From contig NW_003314277.1 in assembly GCF_000143415.4 (NCBI RefSeq), positions 1,625,185 to 1,689,184 on the forward strand: DNA of 64,000 nucleotides. Direction: 5' to 3'. The notes beneath the pieces are model-generated. The model worked only from the letters and a program-made list of their open reading frames with translations, was not told the origin of the DNA and ran no database searches. The position numbers and the translations under genes were made by a program. Origin of the DNA: Selaginella moellendorffii. Its lineage: Eukaryota > Plantae > Lycopodiophyta. Positions 53,601 to 63,600 of this stretch are shown here, in pieces; position 1 is the stretch's first letter, and each line of letters opens with the position of its first letter.

Positions 53601-54123
53601 GACAAGGAGTTTCTGAAACCATGATACATAGGACTCTAGAAAACGTTGTCTTGTAAATTCCTGAAACGTAATTCCCAGCAGTCCCACTCCCGCATAGCGT
53701 GAATCAGCCTAAGGGAAAAAGATAAGACAAGGAGCTTATGAAACAACACAAGCGTACCACCGGACTGGAGAGAAGACCATGCAAGCGCTCGACCCACGCA
53801 TCCACCGCGCATTTCCTAGCATCAGCAGCGGCTTTGGCAGCCGCGCCACCATGGAAAGGATGCAATCCCGGCGCCACTGCCGCAGCAGCCATGGGCTCGG
53901 ACAGCAATGCATGGCGCCGGATGAGAGTCGCGGCGAATTCCAGCTGCGCCAATCGAGACCCGCTACCAATGAAATGCCGCTCCTGCTGCGACCTGTGGAG
54001 GTGATGATCTTCCGGCAAATGCGTCTGCATCACGGCCTGGAGAAGCGCTGGGCGAAGACGAGGATCGTGAACGTTGTGGATGCCGTCCTCAAACCCCAGC
54101 GCCATCGCCGCCATAGCCGCCAT
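50633..54123 (-). CDS. PELP1: PELP1/Rix1-like ribosome biogenesis protein (multi-exon)
   Basis: DPRLRPALL, AVDAWVERL, CSELPALH, AAYKALLASLLSP...PPYL and C-terminal LPDIIDGDPDSD. Telo-box AAACCCTA at 54141. Confidence 0.8.
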
Positions 54124-54145
54124 GGGAATGGAAACCTCGCAAACC

Positions 54146-55996
54146 CTAGAAATCCCTAGTGGGGGTTTTAGGAGCTTTGGAATGCAAAGAGGCGGGATAT
54201 AGAGAAACCGTCTTGGACGATAACGCGAGTTCGAATCCTCGGTAGCGCTTCCACTCCACTGCCATGGCATTGGCGACAAGCACATAGCCACTGGCGGCGC
54301 GCGGGTCGAAATATTTCGCCCCGGCCCTCGCGATCGCGAGATCCGCCCCATTCCTGCAAGATCGAAGCACACAGCTCCACTCCAAATCATCCGGGGCAAA
54401 GGGCATAGCAGCGATGAGATCCATGGCGTCGTCCAGCGATCCCGCGCGGCACAGCAGATCGGCAATGCAGCAGTGATCGCGCTTCGAGGGGTGGACGCCG
54501 TAGCTCTCTCGCATCGACACGAAGATCGACCGCGCAGCGTCCATCTGGCCGAGATGGACGCACGCCGCCAGCGCCGCCTCGAAGCACGCGGCATCCGGCG
54601 CCTCCTCTAGCTGCATTTCGAAGAAGAGGTCCAGGGCTTGGCCGGGCAGGCCATTGCTCGCAGATGCCGCCAGGATGCCGCCCCACGCCGCGGTATCCCG
54701 CTGCGGCATACAGCCGAAGAGCTTTCGCGCCATCTCTACTTGCCCGCTTTGGGAATATGCTGCGGACAGTACCGTCCACGACGCCGCAGTACGCCGTGGC
54801 ATGCTCCCAAACACGGCCTTGGACTCCGCGAGCCTCTCGTTATTGAAAAACGCTACTAGCATACAGTCCCAACTGACGGAATCTCTCTCGGGCATCCCAT
54901 CAAACGTAAATTTTGCTAGCTCCAGATGCTCGCATTGGGCATATGCCGCAAGTATGGCATTCCAAGAAACTAGGTCCTTCATTGGCATAATTTCAAAGAT
55001 GCTTTTAGCGGAATCAAGTCTCCCGTTAGCAGTATATACAGAAAGCAATGTGTTCCAAGAGAAGAGATTGTGGCGCGGTATTTGATCAAACACAAGCTTG
55101 GCCTCCTCCACATTCCCGTCCTGGGAATATGCTGTAAGGAGAGCTGTCCACGTTATAAGATCCGTCTGTGGCATATCCTCCAATACTGCCCAGGCACCCG
55201 TGATGTTTCTACTCTGTACAAATGTGGAAACCATCGTATTACAGGAGCTAAGGCTTCTGTACGGCATGGCACAGTATAATGCCCAAGATTCCTCTAGATA
55301 CCCAGCACGGGCATATGCGGCAAGCATTGCGTTCCAGCACACAATATCTCGCTGACGAATCTCATTAAAGATTCTGATGGCCTCGCCAAGATTCCCTATC
55401 TCAGAGTATGCTGCCAGCATGGCAGTCCAGGAGACCACATTGTGCTCAGGCATCTCGTCAAACGCGCGTTTGGCGTATTCTAGGTTCCCGCTTTGGGAAT
55501 ATGCCGTGAGCTTGGCATTCCATACGACAAAACTCCTCTCAGGCATCTCGTCAAAAATGCGCTCGGCATCTACAAGATGCCCATTGGTGGCATAAGTAGA
55601 AAGCATTGCCGTCCATAAGACTAAGTCTCTCTCGGGCATAGAATCGAAAAGTTTTACGGCCTCTTTGATCAAGCCGAGTTCGCCATGAAATTTGAGCATG
55701 GTTGTTCCCGAGACAAGATTCCTGTGGGGCATGACAGTGAAGATTTTTTGGGCCTCCTCCATATGCCCGTCTTGTACATATGCATCCAATATCAAATCCC
55801 AGGAGTAGTAGTCTTTTCTGCGGATGCTTTGAAAAATTTTGCGAGCGTTCTTTGGGCTTCCACAGCTCGTGTACATCTCAATCAGTTTGTTGGCTAAGAA
55901 GGTGTCTAAGATCTTAATCCTGCAGTGAAGTTCTTGTGCAATTGTGAGATCCCTACAAGATTGTATAGCTCTTAGTAACTTGTTTCGATCCATCAT
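54146..55996 (-). CDS. PLS-class pentatricopeptide repeat protein with partial E domain, no DYW
   Basis: Many ~31-aa repeats (..FDEMPER.VV.W.AML.AY..G), then HCCIADLLCRAGSL and ASGYVLVAN. Confidence 0.92.
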   Translation of the reverse strand: MMDRNKLLRAIQSCRDLTIAQELHCRIKILDTFLANKLIEMYTSCGSPKNARKIFQSIRRKDYYSWDLILDAYVQDGHMEEAQKIFTVMPHRNLVSGTTMLKFHGELGLIKEAVKLFDSMPERDLVLWTAMLSTYATNGHLVDAERIFDEMPERSFVVWNAKLTAYSQSGNLEYAKRAFDEMPEHNVVSWTAMLAAYSEIGNLGEAIRIFNEIRQRDIVCWNAMLAAYARAGYLEESWALYCAMPYRSLSSCNTMVSTFVQSRNITGAWAVLEDMPQTDLITWTALLTAYSQDGNVEEAKLVFDQIPRHNLFSWNTLLSVYTANGRLDSAKSIFEIMPMKDLVSWNAILAAYAQCEHLELAKFTFDGMPERDSVSWDCMLVAFFNNERLAESKAVFGSMPRRTAASWTVLSAAYSQSGQVEMARKLFGCMPQRDTAAWGGILAASASNGLPGQALDLFFEMQLEEAPDAACFEAALAACVHLGQMDAARSIFVSMRESYGVHPSKRDHCCIADLLCRAGSLDDAMDLIAAMPFAPDDLEWSCVLRSCRNGADLAIARAGAKYFDPRAASGYVLVANAMAVEWKRYRGFELALSSKTVSLYPASLHSKAPKTPTRDF

Positions 55997-56514
55997 GCCA
56001 TAGTTTCAGCTAGAATTCATAAATAAAGTGATCTTTTTAAGTTACAAAAGACCCCAATTAGTAATATTTAATGTTGGCAAAATGTAAACTTTCACTCTAA
56101 ATTTATTTTTTAAAGTTAAAATAAAGATAAGATCATTTATTTCTTTTTCAGGGGTTTTGCGGGATCATTTCAGGCATTTCAAGATCACAGTGAGCGTTTC
56201 AGCTGAGGATAGATTTCTACTGCTCACAAGCGTGGCAACCTCAAAGCTGGTCACTTCCCTCCTGGCTGCCAGGCCCAGGTTGTAAATCTCTTGGTAGATA
56301 CGATAGTTTTCATTCTTGCAAGCAGCCTCGCCAGCGATTCCCAGAGACTTGGTCCATCATCCCGAGCGAGATTGTTTTTAAGAAGCTAGGTTGAGGATCC
56401 AGGAAAATTTTGAACTCCTCTCCCAGGATGTCACACACTCGCTGGGGCAAGGAGGCGAGGAAGGAGCTCGTTCTCCATTCCTCGAAGGATTTCTTACATC
56501 TCCATCTTTTATGA

Positions 56515-57195
56515 TCAAGAAAATATAATCGCATACCTCACTTTCACCCTCCGGGGGTCATAGACGGCGAAAATTCTCTCCTGGCCTCGTGTGAACTCCA
56601 CTGGAACTTGCAGATGCGCCACTGGCAAGAAAGTAATCCCCCTCTTCTTGCCAAACACGAGTGAATCTTTGCCAGAAGGGGCCGCTCGCAGCGAAGGCAG
56701 TGTTTCAGCTTGTGTCTCAAAAATGCTCCCCAGGGCCACCTCGCAGAGAAGAACAACGCGCAACCCATTTGCTCCTGCTGTAGCATAGGACAATGCCTTC
56801 CCGACGTAATCGGTCAAGTAGACAGCGTACCTATGATGCAAAGAAAACACAACACTAGAGACAAACTACGAGTAAGAAAAACAAGTTCAAACTCACCCGT
56901 ACGTGTCAAAAGCGTTCGAATTTGTCGGGATCTCAAGACCATTTTCCACTATTGCCTTCAGATTATTGATGTGCGTACCGTGCCACAGAGCTAGAACACA
57001 AAGAAAATCAAAGAGAAAATGTGCAAGTTTTTTCATACCCGTGCGAGCGAGCGATGCGAAATCCTCGTCAAGATCTCCACCATTGCACTTTAAAATCCTA
57101 TCAATCTTGCCTGGATTTCCCCACCTCGCCCAAACGTCCTCGATCTCACGCACCTCTGGATTCTTCGCAGCCGAGAGTGTAGTGACGTTGCCCAT
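56515..57195 (-). CDS. Stand-alone PARP-fold ADP-ribosyltransferase (188 aa, 3 exons)
   Basis: Exons 57195-57039, 56990-56897 and 56830-56515 sum to 567 nt, open. Motifs LWHGT, GYAVYLTD, KALSY, LLCEVALG, GKDS, IFAVYDPRRVKVRY. An alternative in-frame ATG is at 57246. Confidence 0.8.
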
Positions 57196-57699
57196 GGCGC
57201 TGTTTGAATTAGGGTAGAACCAAGTTGCTTTGATTTTTCTGAGCATTACTTGTGTGAAAAGTATCTAAAATGGAAAGGAAGTCGAATTTTGGGCCACTTG
57301 AGGATGAAGAGCTTGCAAGAGAGGATGGGTGCTGAACCAACATGGTCACGATCCAGAAAAATTTTATCCTGTGCTCCAGCGAGGCGCTTGGCATAGGACC
57401 TAAAAACCCTGAATCACTATGTTCACGCTACATGTAGTGAGCCGTGAAATGGCGATAGTTTTCCTTCTGTCACAACCCAGAGCTTGCTCACGCTTCCAGA
57501 TTGTTGTGGCTCACCTATAAGAAGCATTGGAAAAAGCAAACACAATGTCTTGCAAAACTCTCATACCATTAAAACTCCTCCCTAAATGAGTGATAAACCT
57601 TCTTCCCACGACATCAAGGTCCTACAATAATCCAAACAGCAGAATCACGAAAGTGTTGAAAGACAATATAGGATTCTTACAAGGTGATTTGAAGGCTTA

Positions 57700-60523
57700 T
57701 TAAAAGATCTGTTGAATGTGATTTTTGCAAGAGCCACATGACTCTTTTGCAGTTTCCCAAGAGACCAAATGAACCCAAGAAAGTGCGAATCTTTTGCTCT
57801 GGAGCACCCTGTACCAATGAACAGTCATAAACTGATAACAAGCAAGACAGCCCACCCTCCCAACCTTTAAAGCATTATAGACCATGGAATATTTTTAAAA
57901 TATTCCTGTGGTTTGTGTCATTCTCCCCTCCCAACTATATATAGCAGCCTTGAGAAGCTAAACAATTCAAGACAATATAACCATGGAGAAAAGATGTGTA
58001 AAAAAATCTAGGAAATCACAAGCATGAGGTATCTGAACCAAAGCCAAACTCAAACTTGCTAGAATTTGTTCCTTCAAGGCTTGAAATGAACTTTGAGCAG
58101 CTTCAAACCAAGAGAAGTTGGATGAGTGAATGATATCTGTAAGAGGAGCTACTATTGATGTAAAGTGCTGCACAAACTTGCAAAGGTAGTTAGCAAAGCC
58201 CAAACATGCTCGAAGTTTCTTCAATGATGAAGGTTCAAGCCACTTACTAATAGCACTGCACTTATTTGGATTAGCCATCAACTACCCGTTGGAAACTTTG
58301 AACCCCAGATGTGTGATCTCAGTTATACCGAAGTTACACTTGGATAATTTTGCCACCATGCCATGCTGTTTGAGTACAGCCAATACGGTTGAGATGTGCC
58401 AAGAACAGCTGTAGATAAGTATATCATCAAAGAAAACTACAACGAACTTGAAGAGGAATGTGGCCTGAAAGGTAGCAGGGGCATTAGACAAGCCAAAAGG
58501 CATTACACAAATTCAAAAAGCCCCCTGTGTGTCCAAAATGTTGTTTTATGTTGACCTGCAGCTGCCACCCTGATCTGATAATCTATCTTGCTGAGAAACT
58601 TAGCATGACATTGTTCCTTATTCAGCACTCGATAATCCACGCACAGTCGCCATGTGCCATCTTCAAAACTAGAAGCACCGGGGATGCAAACGCACTAGTG
58701 CTCTCAAAGATCATCCCTTGCTGAAGAAGATCCTCGACCATGGAGTCTACAATTTCACGTTTGTCTCGTGTCATGCATATAATCGGCCAAGTGATAGAAG
58801 AAACTCTTGGCTCCAAGTCAATATGGTGCTATACTCCTGTGTGGTCACTGATAAATGCTGAAAGTGAGCACCTAAACACAAGGAGGTGTGCCTCAAGGAT
58901 GGCACACAATGCACTTCTACTTACTTCACAACACTCTTTCCATCACCACTTCCTCCACTGAGATATTGCTGGCGGAGAGGTGATCGTTTGCTTTCTTCTT
59001 AGCTGCTTTCTTCACGGCTTTCTTCTGATCTGCATCTTTCTCAATCACCTCCCTGTTAGACAAGCTTTCTAAGGTCTCTTCTTTCTTCACTGCTTTCTTC
59101 AAACCTTCAAAGCAACTCAAGTTGCTACTGTTTTCTTGATTATCATATCGGGGAGGATTCTTAACTTCTGCTTTCTTCATGTCCGCTTTCTTCACCACTC
59201 CTTTCTTTAGTTCTGCTTTCTTCGTATTGTGATCCTCCTCCTCATCTACTTTTCCCCTGCTGAGCTTTAATTCTTCCCTCGGCCAGTCCGAGATAAGGAC
59301 CTCTGCACCTTGTTTTGCAAACAATAGCATTGTGCTGCCATTGCCAACACAATAGCTCCCATGGAGACCACCCCTTTCAATGCTGTTCTTGGAAGTTAAC
59401 CAATATATCCGCCAACTGTGCCAAGGTCTCCACTCTAAGAACTACATCCCCTACTCCCATGTCAAGCACGTAGAAGTGTTCCAAAACAGCGTAGTCGTTG
59501 ATCATAAAGGAATAGAAAACCTACTCTCTTGTGCAAACTGTTTCCCCATCAGCTATTTCCTAGAACTTGCTCCACCTGCTGTGCATGCAACTTCAGCTTC
59601 GATAAGGATCACCTATTGATGAAGGTATTAGAAGCGCTAGAATCCAGTAGGCCAAAGGCCTCCCGACCATTAATGTGTCCCTTCAACCTGAAACAGGCTA
59701 GACTTGCCAAAGAATGCTAGACTAGAAATTGTTGCCTTCGCCTCTGCCAACCCAGGGCGCAATAGCTCATCCTTATGAGCTGCCTCCCAGATCAACACTT
59801 CGCCAGTTTCCTCAAAGTCATCCATGTTGACTTGCAAGAGATTTCCATTTCATCCTCTTTAAAGTACAACATGGCTGCTTGTCCTTGGATGATTGTCTTG
59901 TTCTTATGCACTAGACACGAAAGGTGGTGATCGTGACTCCATTTGTCTCGGCAGTTGAATCACTTGCCCATCTTCAAATCCTCCATGCATTTAGATTTTT
60001 CGTCATAACTGCTTCTCTCCTGCTGTCGATTGGTCTGGAGCAGTTTGGGTGAATGGCAGAATCTCTCAAGAAGGTTGGAAACGACATCCTCCATTATCTG
60101 TGCATCTCACGCAGAACTGTGAATTTGCATTCACCATTGCTTCTCTAATTGAAGTTGGTTTTGTTTGAGCAACATCAGCTGCCATGGTTGTGGAAGAGCC
60201 GTGATATACTGTTCTGTGAGTACATCTTCCAAAACATTACCGACCTCAAATCGATTCCGCAACCATGTAGCGTTGAAAACTTGCAAGCCCTACTTCTGCC
60301 AATCGTAGCATAGATCACAAAGCTTATTGAATGGGGAATTGGTCACTGGTGTCAAGATGAATGTCTCTTCCAACATCTTCTTGAACTGTGGCCACAAAGG
60401 AAAAATCTTTGCCTGCTCCAAATTATGGAACCATTCGGATGCCAAATCCTTTAGATGCATTGCAGCGAACGGCACCTTCTCGTGATCTCTCCATTGTCTA
60501 CAAACAAAGTTGTGCTCCATTTT
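57700..60523 (-). mobile_element. Degenerate Ty3/Gypsy remnant (gag, protease, RT, start of RNase H)
   Basis: Gag [46 protein letters not shown] and LGFANY motifs, broken by frameshifts. Boundaries approximate. Confidence 0.85.
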
Positions 60524-60674
60524 TGCCTAACGAAAGGTGAAACCGTGTGATGGTGCTCAAGATCCGTCATAGCATATATGGAATGGAAAATGTACATATG
60601 TGTGACATGGTGAACCGGTGAAGACTCGTGTCTCTCCACGTGGACTAACCACGTGGCACAGGGCACTCTCAACA
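60524..60674 (-). repeat. Putative short 3' LTR of the Copia element
   Basis: Begins TGTTG right after purine-rich AGTGGGAG and ends ...TAGGCA where Gypsy gag sequence resumes. The 5' LTR is not in the window. Confidence 0.55.
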
Positions 60675-63600
60675 CTCCCACTGGCACTGTGGCCATCACG
60701 AGTGATGCTCATCAGTGGAGAAAGTCCCAGCCCTTCGCGATGGACTTGAAATCGATCTCGAGGTAGTGCTTTTGTGAAGATATCTGCAACCTGAGTGGTC
60801 GTGTCACAGTAGATCAGCTCAATTGTGCCATCTTCCACTTTCTCACGAACAAAATGATGATGAATCCAAGTGTTTGTTGCATGAATGAAAGCGAGGATTG
60901 GCCGCTAACGCAATGCAGCTTTGATTGTCGCAGAAGAGGCGAGTGGGAGTCTTCACACTCACACCAAGGTTAGAAAGTAGTGAGCGTAACCACACACCTT
61001 CTTTGGTAGCTTGTGAGGCTGCCAAATATTCTGCTTCAGTACTAGAGGTTGCCACTGTACTTTGCTTCCTGCTGCACCACGAGACTGTCGCACTGCCCAG
61101 GGAAAACGAATAGCCAGAGGTGGACTTGCGTGTGTCACAGTCTCCCCCAAAATCAGCATCACAGTAGCCCGTGAGGGTAAGCTCTTTTCCCTGGTAGCAC
61201 AATCCAAAGTAAGTAGTACCTCGAAGGTACCTGAAGATGCGTTTCACCGCTGCCCAATGTTGAGATCCAGGATTAGCCAGGAATTGGCTAACTTTGCTGA
61301 CGGCAAAAGAAATATCTGGGCGCGTACAAACAGCTGGATACATGAGACTGCCAACAGCTTGTCTGTAAGGGATGGAGTCCATGGCTCTCTTGTCGTCCTC
61401 TGTCTCAGGAGACATGGCTCGTGAAAGCTGGCAGCCTAGTTCCATTGGTGTCGCCACTGGATTAGAGCTCGTCATAGAAAACCTGGCCAGCATATCTTCT
61501 ATATACTTGGCTTGGTGAAGATAGATAGTGCGTTGAGAGCGATCACGCACAAGTTCCATGCCAAGAAAGTAGGAAGCCGAGCCAAGAGTTTTCATCTCAA
61601 ATTGGCTGCAAAGATCTCGCTTAACCTGGAGAAACATTAAGCGATGATTATGGATGACAAGAGTATCATCAACATAAAGAGCGATGATCACAAATGATTC
61701 ACCCTCCACCCGAATATAAAGATTTGGGTCTGCCTCGCTACGGGAAAGGCCCACACTTAGTATAAAATCGTCAAAGCGTTTGTACCAAGATCTGGGTGCT
61801 TGTTTCAAGCCGTAGACAGCTTTCTTGAGAAGCCAGAGATGTTCCTCTTTTCCAGCGGCTAGAAATCCTTATGGCTGTGCCATATAGATTTCTTCGTCAA
61901 GCGCGCCATAAAGAAACGCCGTGGTCACATCCATCTGTTCCAGATCAAAGTCTCCCACCGCAGCAAAATTAATCAAGGAACGAAGAGTAGAATGCTTAAC
62001 CACTGGAGCGAAGGTGTCGTTGTAGTCAAGTCCAGGAACTTGCGAGCATCCTTTCGCCACCAATCGCGCCTTGTAGCGAACCGAGCCATCAGGATTAAGC
62101 TTCAGAGCATACACCCACATGCTCTTGATAATCTGGCAATTGGAAGGCACAGTTGGAACAAGAACATGTGTCTTGTTCTTTTGCTGTGAAGCAATCTCGG
62201 CTTCCATTGCTACACGCCAGTAAGACGCTTCCTGTGAGGCCATGGCTTCTCCATAGGTCCTCGGAACAGTAGGAGTCCCAGCTGCACGAGAGGAGACCAT
62301 TGTCTCGATGAGACGCTCAGTAGGCCGCCTTGTGCGGATCGATCTGCGTAGAGGATCTGGAGGAGGCGGCGGGGTTGGTGGTGTTGGAGTAGAAGCGGGC
62401 ATAGATTGTTGCATAGGGACTGTTTGAAGCGGCACAGTGATCGTGCCGACAGTCAACTGATCTTGTTCCGCTTCAACGTCATTTTCTTCGGTCAAGGTAG
62501 GTCTGGAAGTAGAACCTAGAAGGAAGAAACGAATTCTCGTTGAAAACCACATCTCTGCTCAGGATCTCCTGCTTCGTGATTGGATTCCAGAGACGATAGG
62601 CTTTGTGATCGAGGCTGTAGCCCACAAACACAGCCTTCTGGCTCTTGGGGTCCAATTTCTTGCGCATTCCATCAGGGATGTGAGCCCACGCTTCACACCC
62701 GAATATTCTCAGATGCGTAACTGTAGGTTTCTTGCCACTCCATGCTTCTTCAGGAGTGATGTCAGCAAGGGCAGAGGTGGGGAGCCGGTTCTGGAGATAG
62801 TTCGCCGTCAAGACAGCGTGAAACCAGAAGCTGCGAGGCAAACCACTGGAAAGTAGCATTGCCCGAGCACTCTCCACTAGTGTGCGATTCTTGCGCTCAG
62901 CTACGCCATTCTGTTGTGGAGTCTCTCGCGTTGTAAGTTCTCGCACAATCCCTCCTTGCTCACACAGCTCGTTGAAAGCATTGGAAGTGAATTCGCCTCC
63001 ACCATCACTTCTCAATCGCTTGAGCATTTTCCCAGTTTGTGTTTCTCCCATATCCTTGAAAGTCTGGAAGTAGTGTAACGATTGGGATTTGCGAGCCATA
63101 GGGTAGATCATAGTGCGACGACTGTAGTCATCAATGAAACTGATAAAGTATTGGATACCTCCCACTGCTGTGGTGGCCATCGGACCACACACATCAGTGT
63201 GTACAAGTTCCATGAGCTCTGTAGCTCGAGATGCTCCAGTCTTGGGGAAAGGTTGGCGAGTAGATTTTCCTAGCTGACAGCCCTGGCAAAATGGAAGAAC
63301 GGCTCTTGGGTCCAGGTCTAGACCTTCAACCATCTGCTCGCGTGCGAGCTGCTTGATTCTATCAGCACTAGGATGCCCCAGGCGTGCGTGCCAAAGCTCC
63401 AGTGAGTGACTGGTCGTTGTCTTTTGTGCGTGTAGGCCCAGACTCCGTCCAGCAAGATCTGGCAGCATGGTAAGGCGGTAGAGGTCACGCCGTCCAGGCC
63501 GGGACGCTGTGAGGATGGCTCCTGTGGTCGAGATCAGCTGGAATTGGCGAGGTGTAATAGCGAACTGATACCCATCCTCAGCAAATTGTCCCACAGAGAA

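Follow-up and report, generated by a model that had tools for sequence, protein, structure and literature searches.

A predicted minimal PARP-type ADP-ribosyltransferase with an H-Y-I triad encoded by LOC9642540 of Selaginella moellendorffii

The gene LOC9642540 lies on the minus strand of the stretch of Selaginella moellendorffii DNA analysed here (the window; 64,000 nucleotides, positions 1,625,185 to 1,689,184 of contig NW_003314277.1). It is transcribed, spliced and under mild purifying selection, and it encodes a protein of 188 amino acids which, judged from a structural model, consists entirely of one ADP-ribosyltransferase (ART) domain. By sequence this is a diverged PARP1/2-type domain with a catalytic triad that reads H-Y-I, and we consider it probable that the product binds NAD+ and transfers at most single ADP-ribose units, independently of DNA. 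So far the gene is known from S. moellendorffii alone; the protein is about 20% identical to PARP1, with fold and frame intact.

The locus has already been catalogued by automatic annotation, yet it is unstudied; literature searches for papers on the locus (by its locus tags) or on lycophyte mono-ARTs found none. The product encoded in the window is RefSeq XP_024531785.1 ('uncharacterized protein LOC9642540', 205 aa), an older model of the same gene is EFJ27902.1 (UniProt D8RJG6, 'NAD(+) ADP-ribosyltransferase'), and a 188-aa protein from another scaffold that is 96% identical, XP_024535907.1, was automatically named 'poly(ADP-ribose) polymerase pme-2'. In older JGI models (246 and 254 aa) the C-terminus is lengthened by splices into the 3' untranslated region. 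A C-terminal extension or an RST domain was considered on this account and rejected, as the 3' untranslated region is continuous in RNA contigs and no Pfam family was found in its reading frames or in the JGI models.

To define the transcript, use was made of public sequencing runs, 20 of which (from 10 studies) hold part of positions 56100-57400, and the contigs of four runs from four studies were aligned over 54100-59900. These runs, RNA by guess, were taken as RNA because their contigs lack the canonical introns. Both splice joints were exact in the contigs of all four, the CT..AC ends on the plus strand being GT..AG on the strand of the gene. One contig of 1325 nt covered 56149-57563 with both introns spliced out and a contig of another run extended to 57569, whereas at 57592-59900 the four runs gave no contigs and no upstream exon was seen. 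The message is a three-exon transcript of about 1.3 kb, with a leader of about 370 nt, a 3' untranslated region of about 365 nt and no upstream exons (Table 1). The spliced coding sequence of 567 nt comprises 188 codons and the stop codon and begins GCC-ATG-G, giving MGNVTT. Thus the frame, the start and both GT-AG introns (48 and 66 nt) that the preliminary description had read from the sequence are all present in the RNA, and no contig joined the gene to upstream exons with WGR or regulatory domains, which that description had named as a sign against its reading. Intron 1 is in frame and stop-free, so that its retention would add 16 residues; retention of intron 2 places a TGA directly after G84. 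Contigs of 119 nt with intron 2 kept were found in two runs and represent either pre-mRNA or a non-productive form. Separately, of the 31-mers of 56100-57400, 43% and 29% occur in runs labelled as two other organisms; either the labels are wrong and the material is S. moellendorffii, or the gene is carried by a very close relative.

Table 1. Features of LOC9642540 and its surroundings, in window positions.
Feature	Positions	Strand	Evidence
Transcribed span, ends approximate	56149..57569	-	contigs of 4 runs
5' leader, seven ATGs	57196..57569	-	sequence scan for upstream ATGs
Coding exon 1, residues 1-52 + one base	57039..57195	-	MGNVTT; ART strand-helix-strand start; profile mapping to PARP1
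Intron 1, 48 nt, GTATGA..TTCTAG, phase 1	56991..57038	-	joint 56990/57039 in 4/4 runs
Coding exon 2, LWHGT; H56 codon 56982-56980, G57 codon 56979-56977	56897..56990	-	Pfam positions 50-76; alignment with PARP1 LWHGS
Intron 2, 66 nt, GTGAGT..TCATAG, phase 2	56831..56896	-	joint in 4/4 runs
Coding exon 3 + stop codon (56517-56515)	56515..56830	-	Pfam positions 86-195 of 199, 1.4e-8
Codons in exon 3: Y88; K95-A96; Y99; I170	56820-56818; 56799-56794; 56787-56785; 56574-56572	-	alignments
3' untranslated region	56149..56514	-	RNA contigs unbroken, no joint
Intronless PPR gene, 616 aa, intact	54146-55996	-	Pfam PPR 4e-84; RNA contigs
Upstream border with gypsy-type reverse-transcriptase remnant	57767..58816	-	blastn against L001 (second copy); RVT_1 1.3e-6 at 58285-58503
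134-aa lysine-rich open frame, KKA/KKE repeats, no Pfam match; between gypsy remnant and copia element	58926-59330	-	
Broken copia element (RVT_2, integrase, gag-pre-integrase), upstream of gene	60846-63921		Pfam

The family to which the protein belongs was clear from profile searches. Pfam PARP (PF00644) matched the whole protein with an E-value of 5e-19 and 69 bits (cutoff 26.7) over profile positions 48-195 of 199, and among the single exons it matched exon 2 (3.3e-4) as well as exon 3. No second Pfam family was found in the 188 residues, and there was no WGR, PARP_reg, WWE or RST domain. When the protein was compared with PDB sequences by phmmer, the catalytic fragments of PARP1 and PARP2 were the best matches (1.6e-7), followed by PARP4, PARP3 and PARP16 (marginal, E 0.03); in this single-sequence search tankyrase, PARP10-15 and RCD1 gave no match at E up to 1, and residues 118-188 used alone matched no PDB sequence. 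On sequence comparison, then, the domain is a diverged PARP1/2-type one, nearest to PARP1 and PARP2. The H-Y-I triad thus does not relate the protein to animal PARP7/10/11/12, which the preliminary description had cited as mono-ARTs with that triad, but the result agrees with that description that a stand-alone PARP-fold domain is present and that its architecture lies outside those of plant PARP1-3 and the SROs. In the profile mapping of exon 1, the WARW stretch fell on IRKYVKN of PARP1 and IDRILKCN on LEVIDIFKIE. The resemblance of DIWARWGNPGK to the WGR domain of PARP2 was examined as a possible WGR remnant and discarded, as it scored 4.1 bits (i-E-value 3.5e+02) and the segment maps to the ART helix IRKYVKN of PARP1.

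An AlphaFold model was built from a 10-row alignment that included the only detectable relatives, single-sequence input having given a pLDDT of 44. The model is of moderate quality (pLDDT 69, pTM 0.71), its low-confidence parts being confined to two variable loops, 77-83 and 145-166, that fall below pLDDT 50. Its N-terminus is formed by a strand at residues 3-7, a helix at 13-23 and a strand at 31-38, and its C-terminus is the last ART strand. Foldseek matched it at E 2e-10 with PARP4, PARP2 and PARP1 at the top, and VIA-align gave Z-scores of 16-17 with an rmsd of about 3 Å over 160-173 residues, PARP12, 13, 10, 14, 15, 1, 3, 4 and tankyrase-2 being tied; an Atlas structural match reached a TM-score of 0.72. 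Residues 1-188 of the model align to PARP1 798-1006 or to PARP10 818-1005. Because the alignment to PARP ART domains runs over the full length, the entire protein is, as modelled, a single ART domain.

The active site was examined in three alignments. HMMER alignment to PARP1 equated H56 with H862, G57 with G863, Y88 with Y896, K95 with K903, A96 with S904 and Y99 with Y907, and HMMER also paired FAVYDPRRVKVRY with YIVYNPNQVRMRY of PARP2, so that the preceding I170 lands on the catalytic Glu. MAFFT placed R-I-F of the Selaginella protein under R-E-F of the H-Y-E domains, and a profile of the MAFFT alignment put the I170 column on N-E-Y of PARP1, that is on E988. Since the three alignments are concordant in equating I170 with E988, the H-Y-I triad (H56, Y88, I170) of the preliminary description is confirmed at the sequence level. 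In PARP1, E988 is the chain-elongating Glu and S904 binds nicotinamide. The Glu at the E988 position by which formers of poly-ADP-ribose are recognised is therefore replaced by I170, and the sequence conforms instead to the H-Y-Φ pattern, with His and Tyr kept and a hydrophobic third residue. Kleine and colleagues are said to have reported in 2008 that a PARP in which the catalytic Glu is missing is unable to extend chains and works as a mono-transferase; such PARPs use substrate-assisted catalysis. Ala at the S904 position is also found in the nearest H-Y-E relatives (K-A-L-x-Y), and thus A96 alone is no argument for inactivity.

The loss of the catalytic Glu (I170) and the Ala at the S904 equivalent would also suit a pseudoenzyme, in which the ART fold has no transferase activity and serves to sense NAD+ or to bind ADP-ribose or protein, as in PARP13 or RCD1/SRO. 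We regard this as conceivable, though unlikely. H-Y-I PARPs, PARP10 among them, are active mono-transferases; the Selaginella protein, in contrast to RCD1 and PARP13, retains the His-Gly pair and the two Tyr residues of the NAD+ pocket, and the phmmer search matched no RCD1 structure at E up to 1. On the other side, the inactive domain of PARP13 fits the model as well as active domains do (Z 16.9), and plant Clade 2 PARP-like proteins described as inactive are on record (Citarelli et al. 2010, PMC2964712).

A second copy of the gene was present at locus L001 (GL377566.1), which is collinear with the window, and the gene is single-copy in each. By blastn, identity between the two was 97.5% over the 7.5 kb downstream (PPR, RIX1 and lectin genes), 95.3% over the gene and 89.8% over the leader and promoter. 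The S. moellendorffii assembly contains two haplotypes, and the L001 copy is probably the allele of the other one. Its coding sequence is intact and agrees with that of the window in length, splice sites and motifs. Of the 16 substitutions that separate the two coding sequences, 8 are synonymous and 8 non-synonymous (dS 0.061, dN 0.019, dN/dS 0.31), and a rough binomial test against neutrality, made on this small set of differences between probable alleles, gave P=0.022. Five of the eight amino-acid replacements are in exon 1; they are conservative and none affects a motif. These figures show that the gene is under mild purifying selection. Among the RNA contigs, a pair of 59 nt at 56773-56831, with 0 and 2 differences, matched the two-base V93/I93 difference between the haplotypes, and therefore both alleles are expressed. 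The preliminary description had named a silent gene with dN/dS near 1, or a truncated PARP2 pseudogene, as outcomes that would count against it; neither was found, as both copies are intact, spliced and expressed and dN/dS is 0.31. Outside the coding sequence the haplotypes differ in the untranslated regions by about 6% (56149-56514) and about 9.6% (57196-57569), with indels in addition, by 1 of 114 sites in the two introns, and by 2.5% in the adjoining 7.5 kb.

Relatives outside Selaginella proved scarce. An exhaustive HMMER search of 1.84 billion protein cluster representatives with exon 3 gave no matches apart from the allelic cluster, a repeat artefact and a single protist protein, which has two PARP domains and is 43% identical over 78 residues of exon 3; beyond the Selaginella cluster no relative scored above about 37 bits in this set. 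Word-index searches of 5.8 billion proteins, whether started from the whole protein or from residues 46-188, gave two Selaginella clusters only, and the same kind of search seeded with the protist relative yielded three more proteins. Close paralogues in the genome would have been picked up by these searches. No relative was found in IMG/VR viral and metagenome contigs. A viral or foreign origin was rejected on this basis together with the spliceosomal introns and a base composition (GC 0.52, GC3 0.56) like that of the PPR neighbour.

The haplotypes cease to be collinear at window position 57766, just upstream of the promoter, L001:1-7449 being unrelated to window 57767-64000; the difference in transposable elements beyond this point is a haplotype-specific insertion or deletion. 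The gene abuts retrotransposon remnants (gypsy RVT_1 and copia), in keeping with the transposable-element border noted in the preliminary description. Capture by a transposon was tested and rejected: around 55900-58100 no terminal repeats, direct or inverted, were present apart from chance matches of 16-17 nt, and the gene is single-copy. On the other flank, contigs show two apparent joints inside the PPR gene, where 392 and 346 nt are skipped and the ends are non-canonical; these look like repeats of the PPR array collapsed in assembly rather than introns. At L001:9398-11032 the annotation divides this neighbour into two partial models that overlap (384 and 258 aa) where the window has a single frame of 616 aa, possibly a difference of annotation or of allele.

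These surroundings, with transposable-element remnants adjoining and many upstream ATGs in the leader, are what might be expected if the gene were a decaying partial duplicate, that is, a young and functionless copy of a PARP catalytic region transcribed from a neighbourhood rich in such elements. The restriction to one species, with just two S. moellendorffii clusters among 5.8 billion proteins, and the lower identity between haplotypes over the gene, leader and promoter than over the adjoining 7.5 kb point the same way. However, both copies keep the frame, the GT-AG introns and all of the motifs, splicing was seen in four of four runs, and the dN/dS of 0.31 reflects replacements that are conservative and outside the motifs. 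In addition, about 20% identity to PARP1 together with an intact fold implies a long period of constrained evolution. We consequently consider decay improbable.

The position of the start codon bears on a further claim, namely that the enzyme is anchored in membranes. ATGs occur in the 5' leader at 57569, 57564, 57527, 57433, 57394, 57343 and 57246, a number that, in a leader of this length, suggests poor translation. The last of them (57246-57244; AGTAATGC) lies 17 codons before MGNV in the same frame, with no stop between them, and has A at -3; it is from here that the RefSeq model of 205 aa starts. In the other haplotype there is an indel in the homologous stretch and the upstream ATGs run into stops, so that the ATG of MGNV is the first to open the frame and the conserved frame begins at MGNV. 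The sequence MGNVTTL fits G-{EDRKHPFYW}-x(2)-[STAGCN]-{P}, a loose and very unspecific PROSITE-type myristoylation pattern, and although codons 3 and 4 show two synonymous changes, the haplotypes agree in all of the first ten residues. In the window haplotype a start at 57246 would make the Gly of MGNV internal, and much of the product of this allele may carry the 17-residue extension that hides it. Membrane anchoring, which the preliminary description had put forward as part of the enzyme's character, is thus not supported beyond a possibility read from the sequence.

We think it very unlikely that the protein is an N-myristoylated, membrane-tethered mono-ART with a role in immunity or a toxin-like one, as had also been suggested. 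The run G2-N-V-T-T-L, its constancy between haplotypes, and the good context of the MGNV ATG (GCCATGG), the first to open the frame in the other haplotype, are consistent with such a protein. Nevertheless, the transcribed in-frame ATG at 57246 would give a product of 205 aa with the Gly internal, the pattern is very unspecific, and the first strand of the model begins at residue 3, leaving no linker. Nor did any signal, neighbour or homologue link the gene to defence.

The reading that we prefer is that the ART domain descended from a PARP1/2-like branch and would have lost the DNA-sensing and autoinhibitory helical parts, with its loops shortened, while retaining the NAD+ pocket (His-Gly, the triad Tyr and the second Tyr). 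Such a protein would transfer single ADP-ribose units to itself or to a partner by substrate-assisted catalysis, as in the H-Y-I PARPs; that it would transfer no more than one unit is inferred because Ile replaces the chain-elongating Glu 988. Its activity would need no DNA breaks and would be free of autoinhibition by a helical domain, and the title of PDB entry 5ds3 describes the ART of PARP1 lacking the helical domain as constitutively active. Against this reading count A96 at the S904 position, the absence of an orthologue from the searches, a dN/dS that is based on 16 substitutions, the moderate quality of the model and the poor translation suggested by the long leader with its seven upstream ATGs. 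A bolder form of it, to which we give very little credence, is that the gene represents an undescribed Selaginella class of minimal PARP mono-ARTs, constitutively active, the 188-aa form being tethered by a myristoyl group and the haplotype-specific ATG acting as a switch between lipidated and soluble products.

Should a minimal mono-ART class be real, land plants would have an endogenous PARP-type writer of MARylation outside PARP1-3 and the SROs; to our knowledge no PARP-family mono-ADP-ribosyltransferases are known in land plants besides the DNA-damage PARPs and the mostly inactive SROs. A bare H-Y-I ART in a lycophyte would amount to a compact natural test of a PARP1-type core without regulatory domains, and it may give access to endogenous MARylation in a vascular plant from an early-diverging lineage. 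The reach of the finding is limited to one species, to a gene for which automatic annotation already exists and to a function that is predicted.

Compared with the known systems, the Selaginella protein is closest in sequence to the ART of PARP1 and PARP2 (Clade 1), with which it shares LWHG(S/T), G-x-x-Y-(F/L)-(A/T)-D, K-x-x-x-Y, LL-x-EVALG and VY(D/N)P..V..(R)Y; the model covers PARP1 798-1006 with a Z-score of 16.8 and 19-20% identity. It differs from PARP1 and PARP2 in having no zinc fingers, BRCT, WGR or helical regulatory domain, and from PARP1 in the changes of E988 to Ile and S904 to Ala, in a loop before the last strands that is about 10 residues shorter, and in length, the ART of PARP1 having about 225 aa to its 188. 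The WGR and PARP_reg domains that stand N-terminal to the ART in canonical plant PARP1/2/3 were found neither by Pfam nor in the transcript.

With animal PARP10/12/14/15 (Clade 3) the protein has in common the H-Y-I triad and a nearly equal domain size (171-200 residues in their crystallised fragments), and these PARPs tie for the best structural match (Z 16.6-17.0), whereas identity is only 14-16% and in Clade 3 proteins the catalytic domain is always accompanied by macro, WWE, zinc-finger or other domains. This mono-ART clade had no plant members in a survey that did not include Selaginella (Citarelli et al. 2010, PMC2964712). Given the low identity, the lack of a phmmer match and a Clade 3 without plants, the shared Ile is best read as convergent. 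The SRO/RCD1 proteins (Clade 2) resemble it in being plant PARP-like domains without a WGR or regulatory domain, some of them short. The defining feature of SROs is an RST domain at the C-terminus, to which a WWE domain may be added (PMC2848248), while the RNA-supported model of LOC9642540 ends at the stop at 56515 with no such domain; RCD1, moreover, lacks the His and Tyr that the Selaginella protein has kept. The N-terminal helical domain and C-terminal membrane anchor of Clade 6/PARP16 are likewise absent, the protein ending with the last ART strand.

Four protist proteins with two PARP domains are the only non-Selaginella sequences to match exon 3 at E<1e-3, and they share K-A-L-x-Y-A and LLC-x-V-x-LG with it. 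They have R-E-F where the Selaginella protein has R-I-F, are 627-703 aa long and mostly H-Y-E, and their overall identity is 26-30%. In three of them the N-terminus reads MGC(T/V), a motif of the acylation type, which hints at membrane-attached PARP-like proteins in protists.

In architecture, the protein corresponds to PARPs that consist of the catalytic domain only. Atlas clusters of 171-206 aa, about 98% of them with PF00644 alone, come from Chordata, Arthropoda and Nucleocytoviricota, and Dictyostelium DDB0304590 is likewise described as having nothing but a PARP catalytic domain (PMC2964712). The Selaginella protein shows no detectable specific sequence relationship to these, and its gene has spliceosomal introns and a host-like base composition. 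Since other eukaryotes and giant viruses thus have catalytic-domain-only PARPs as well, the bare-domain architecture of the LOC9642540 product is not in itself new to biology.
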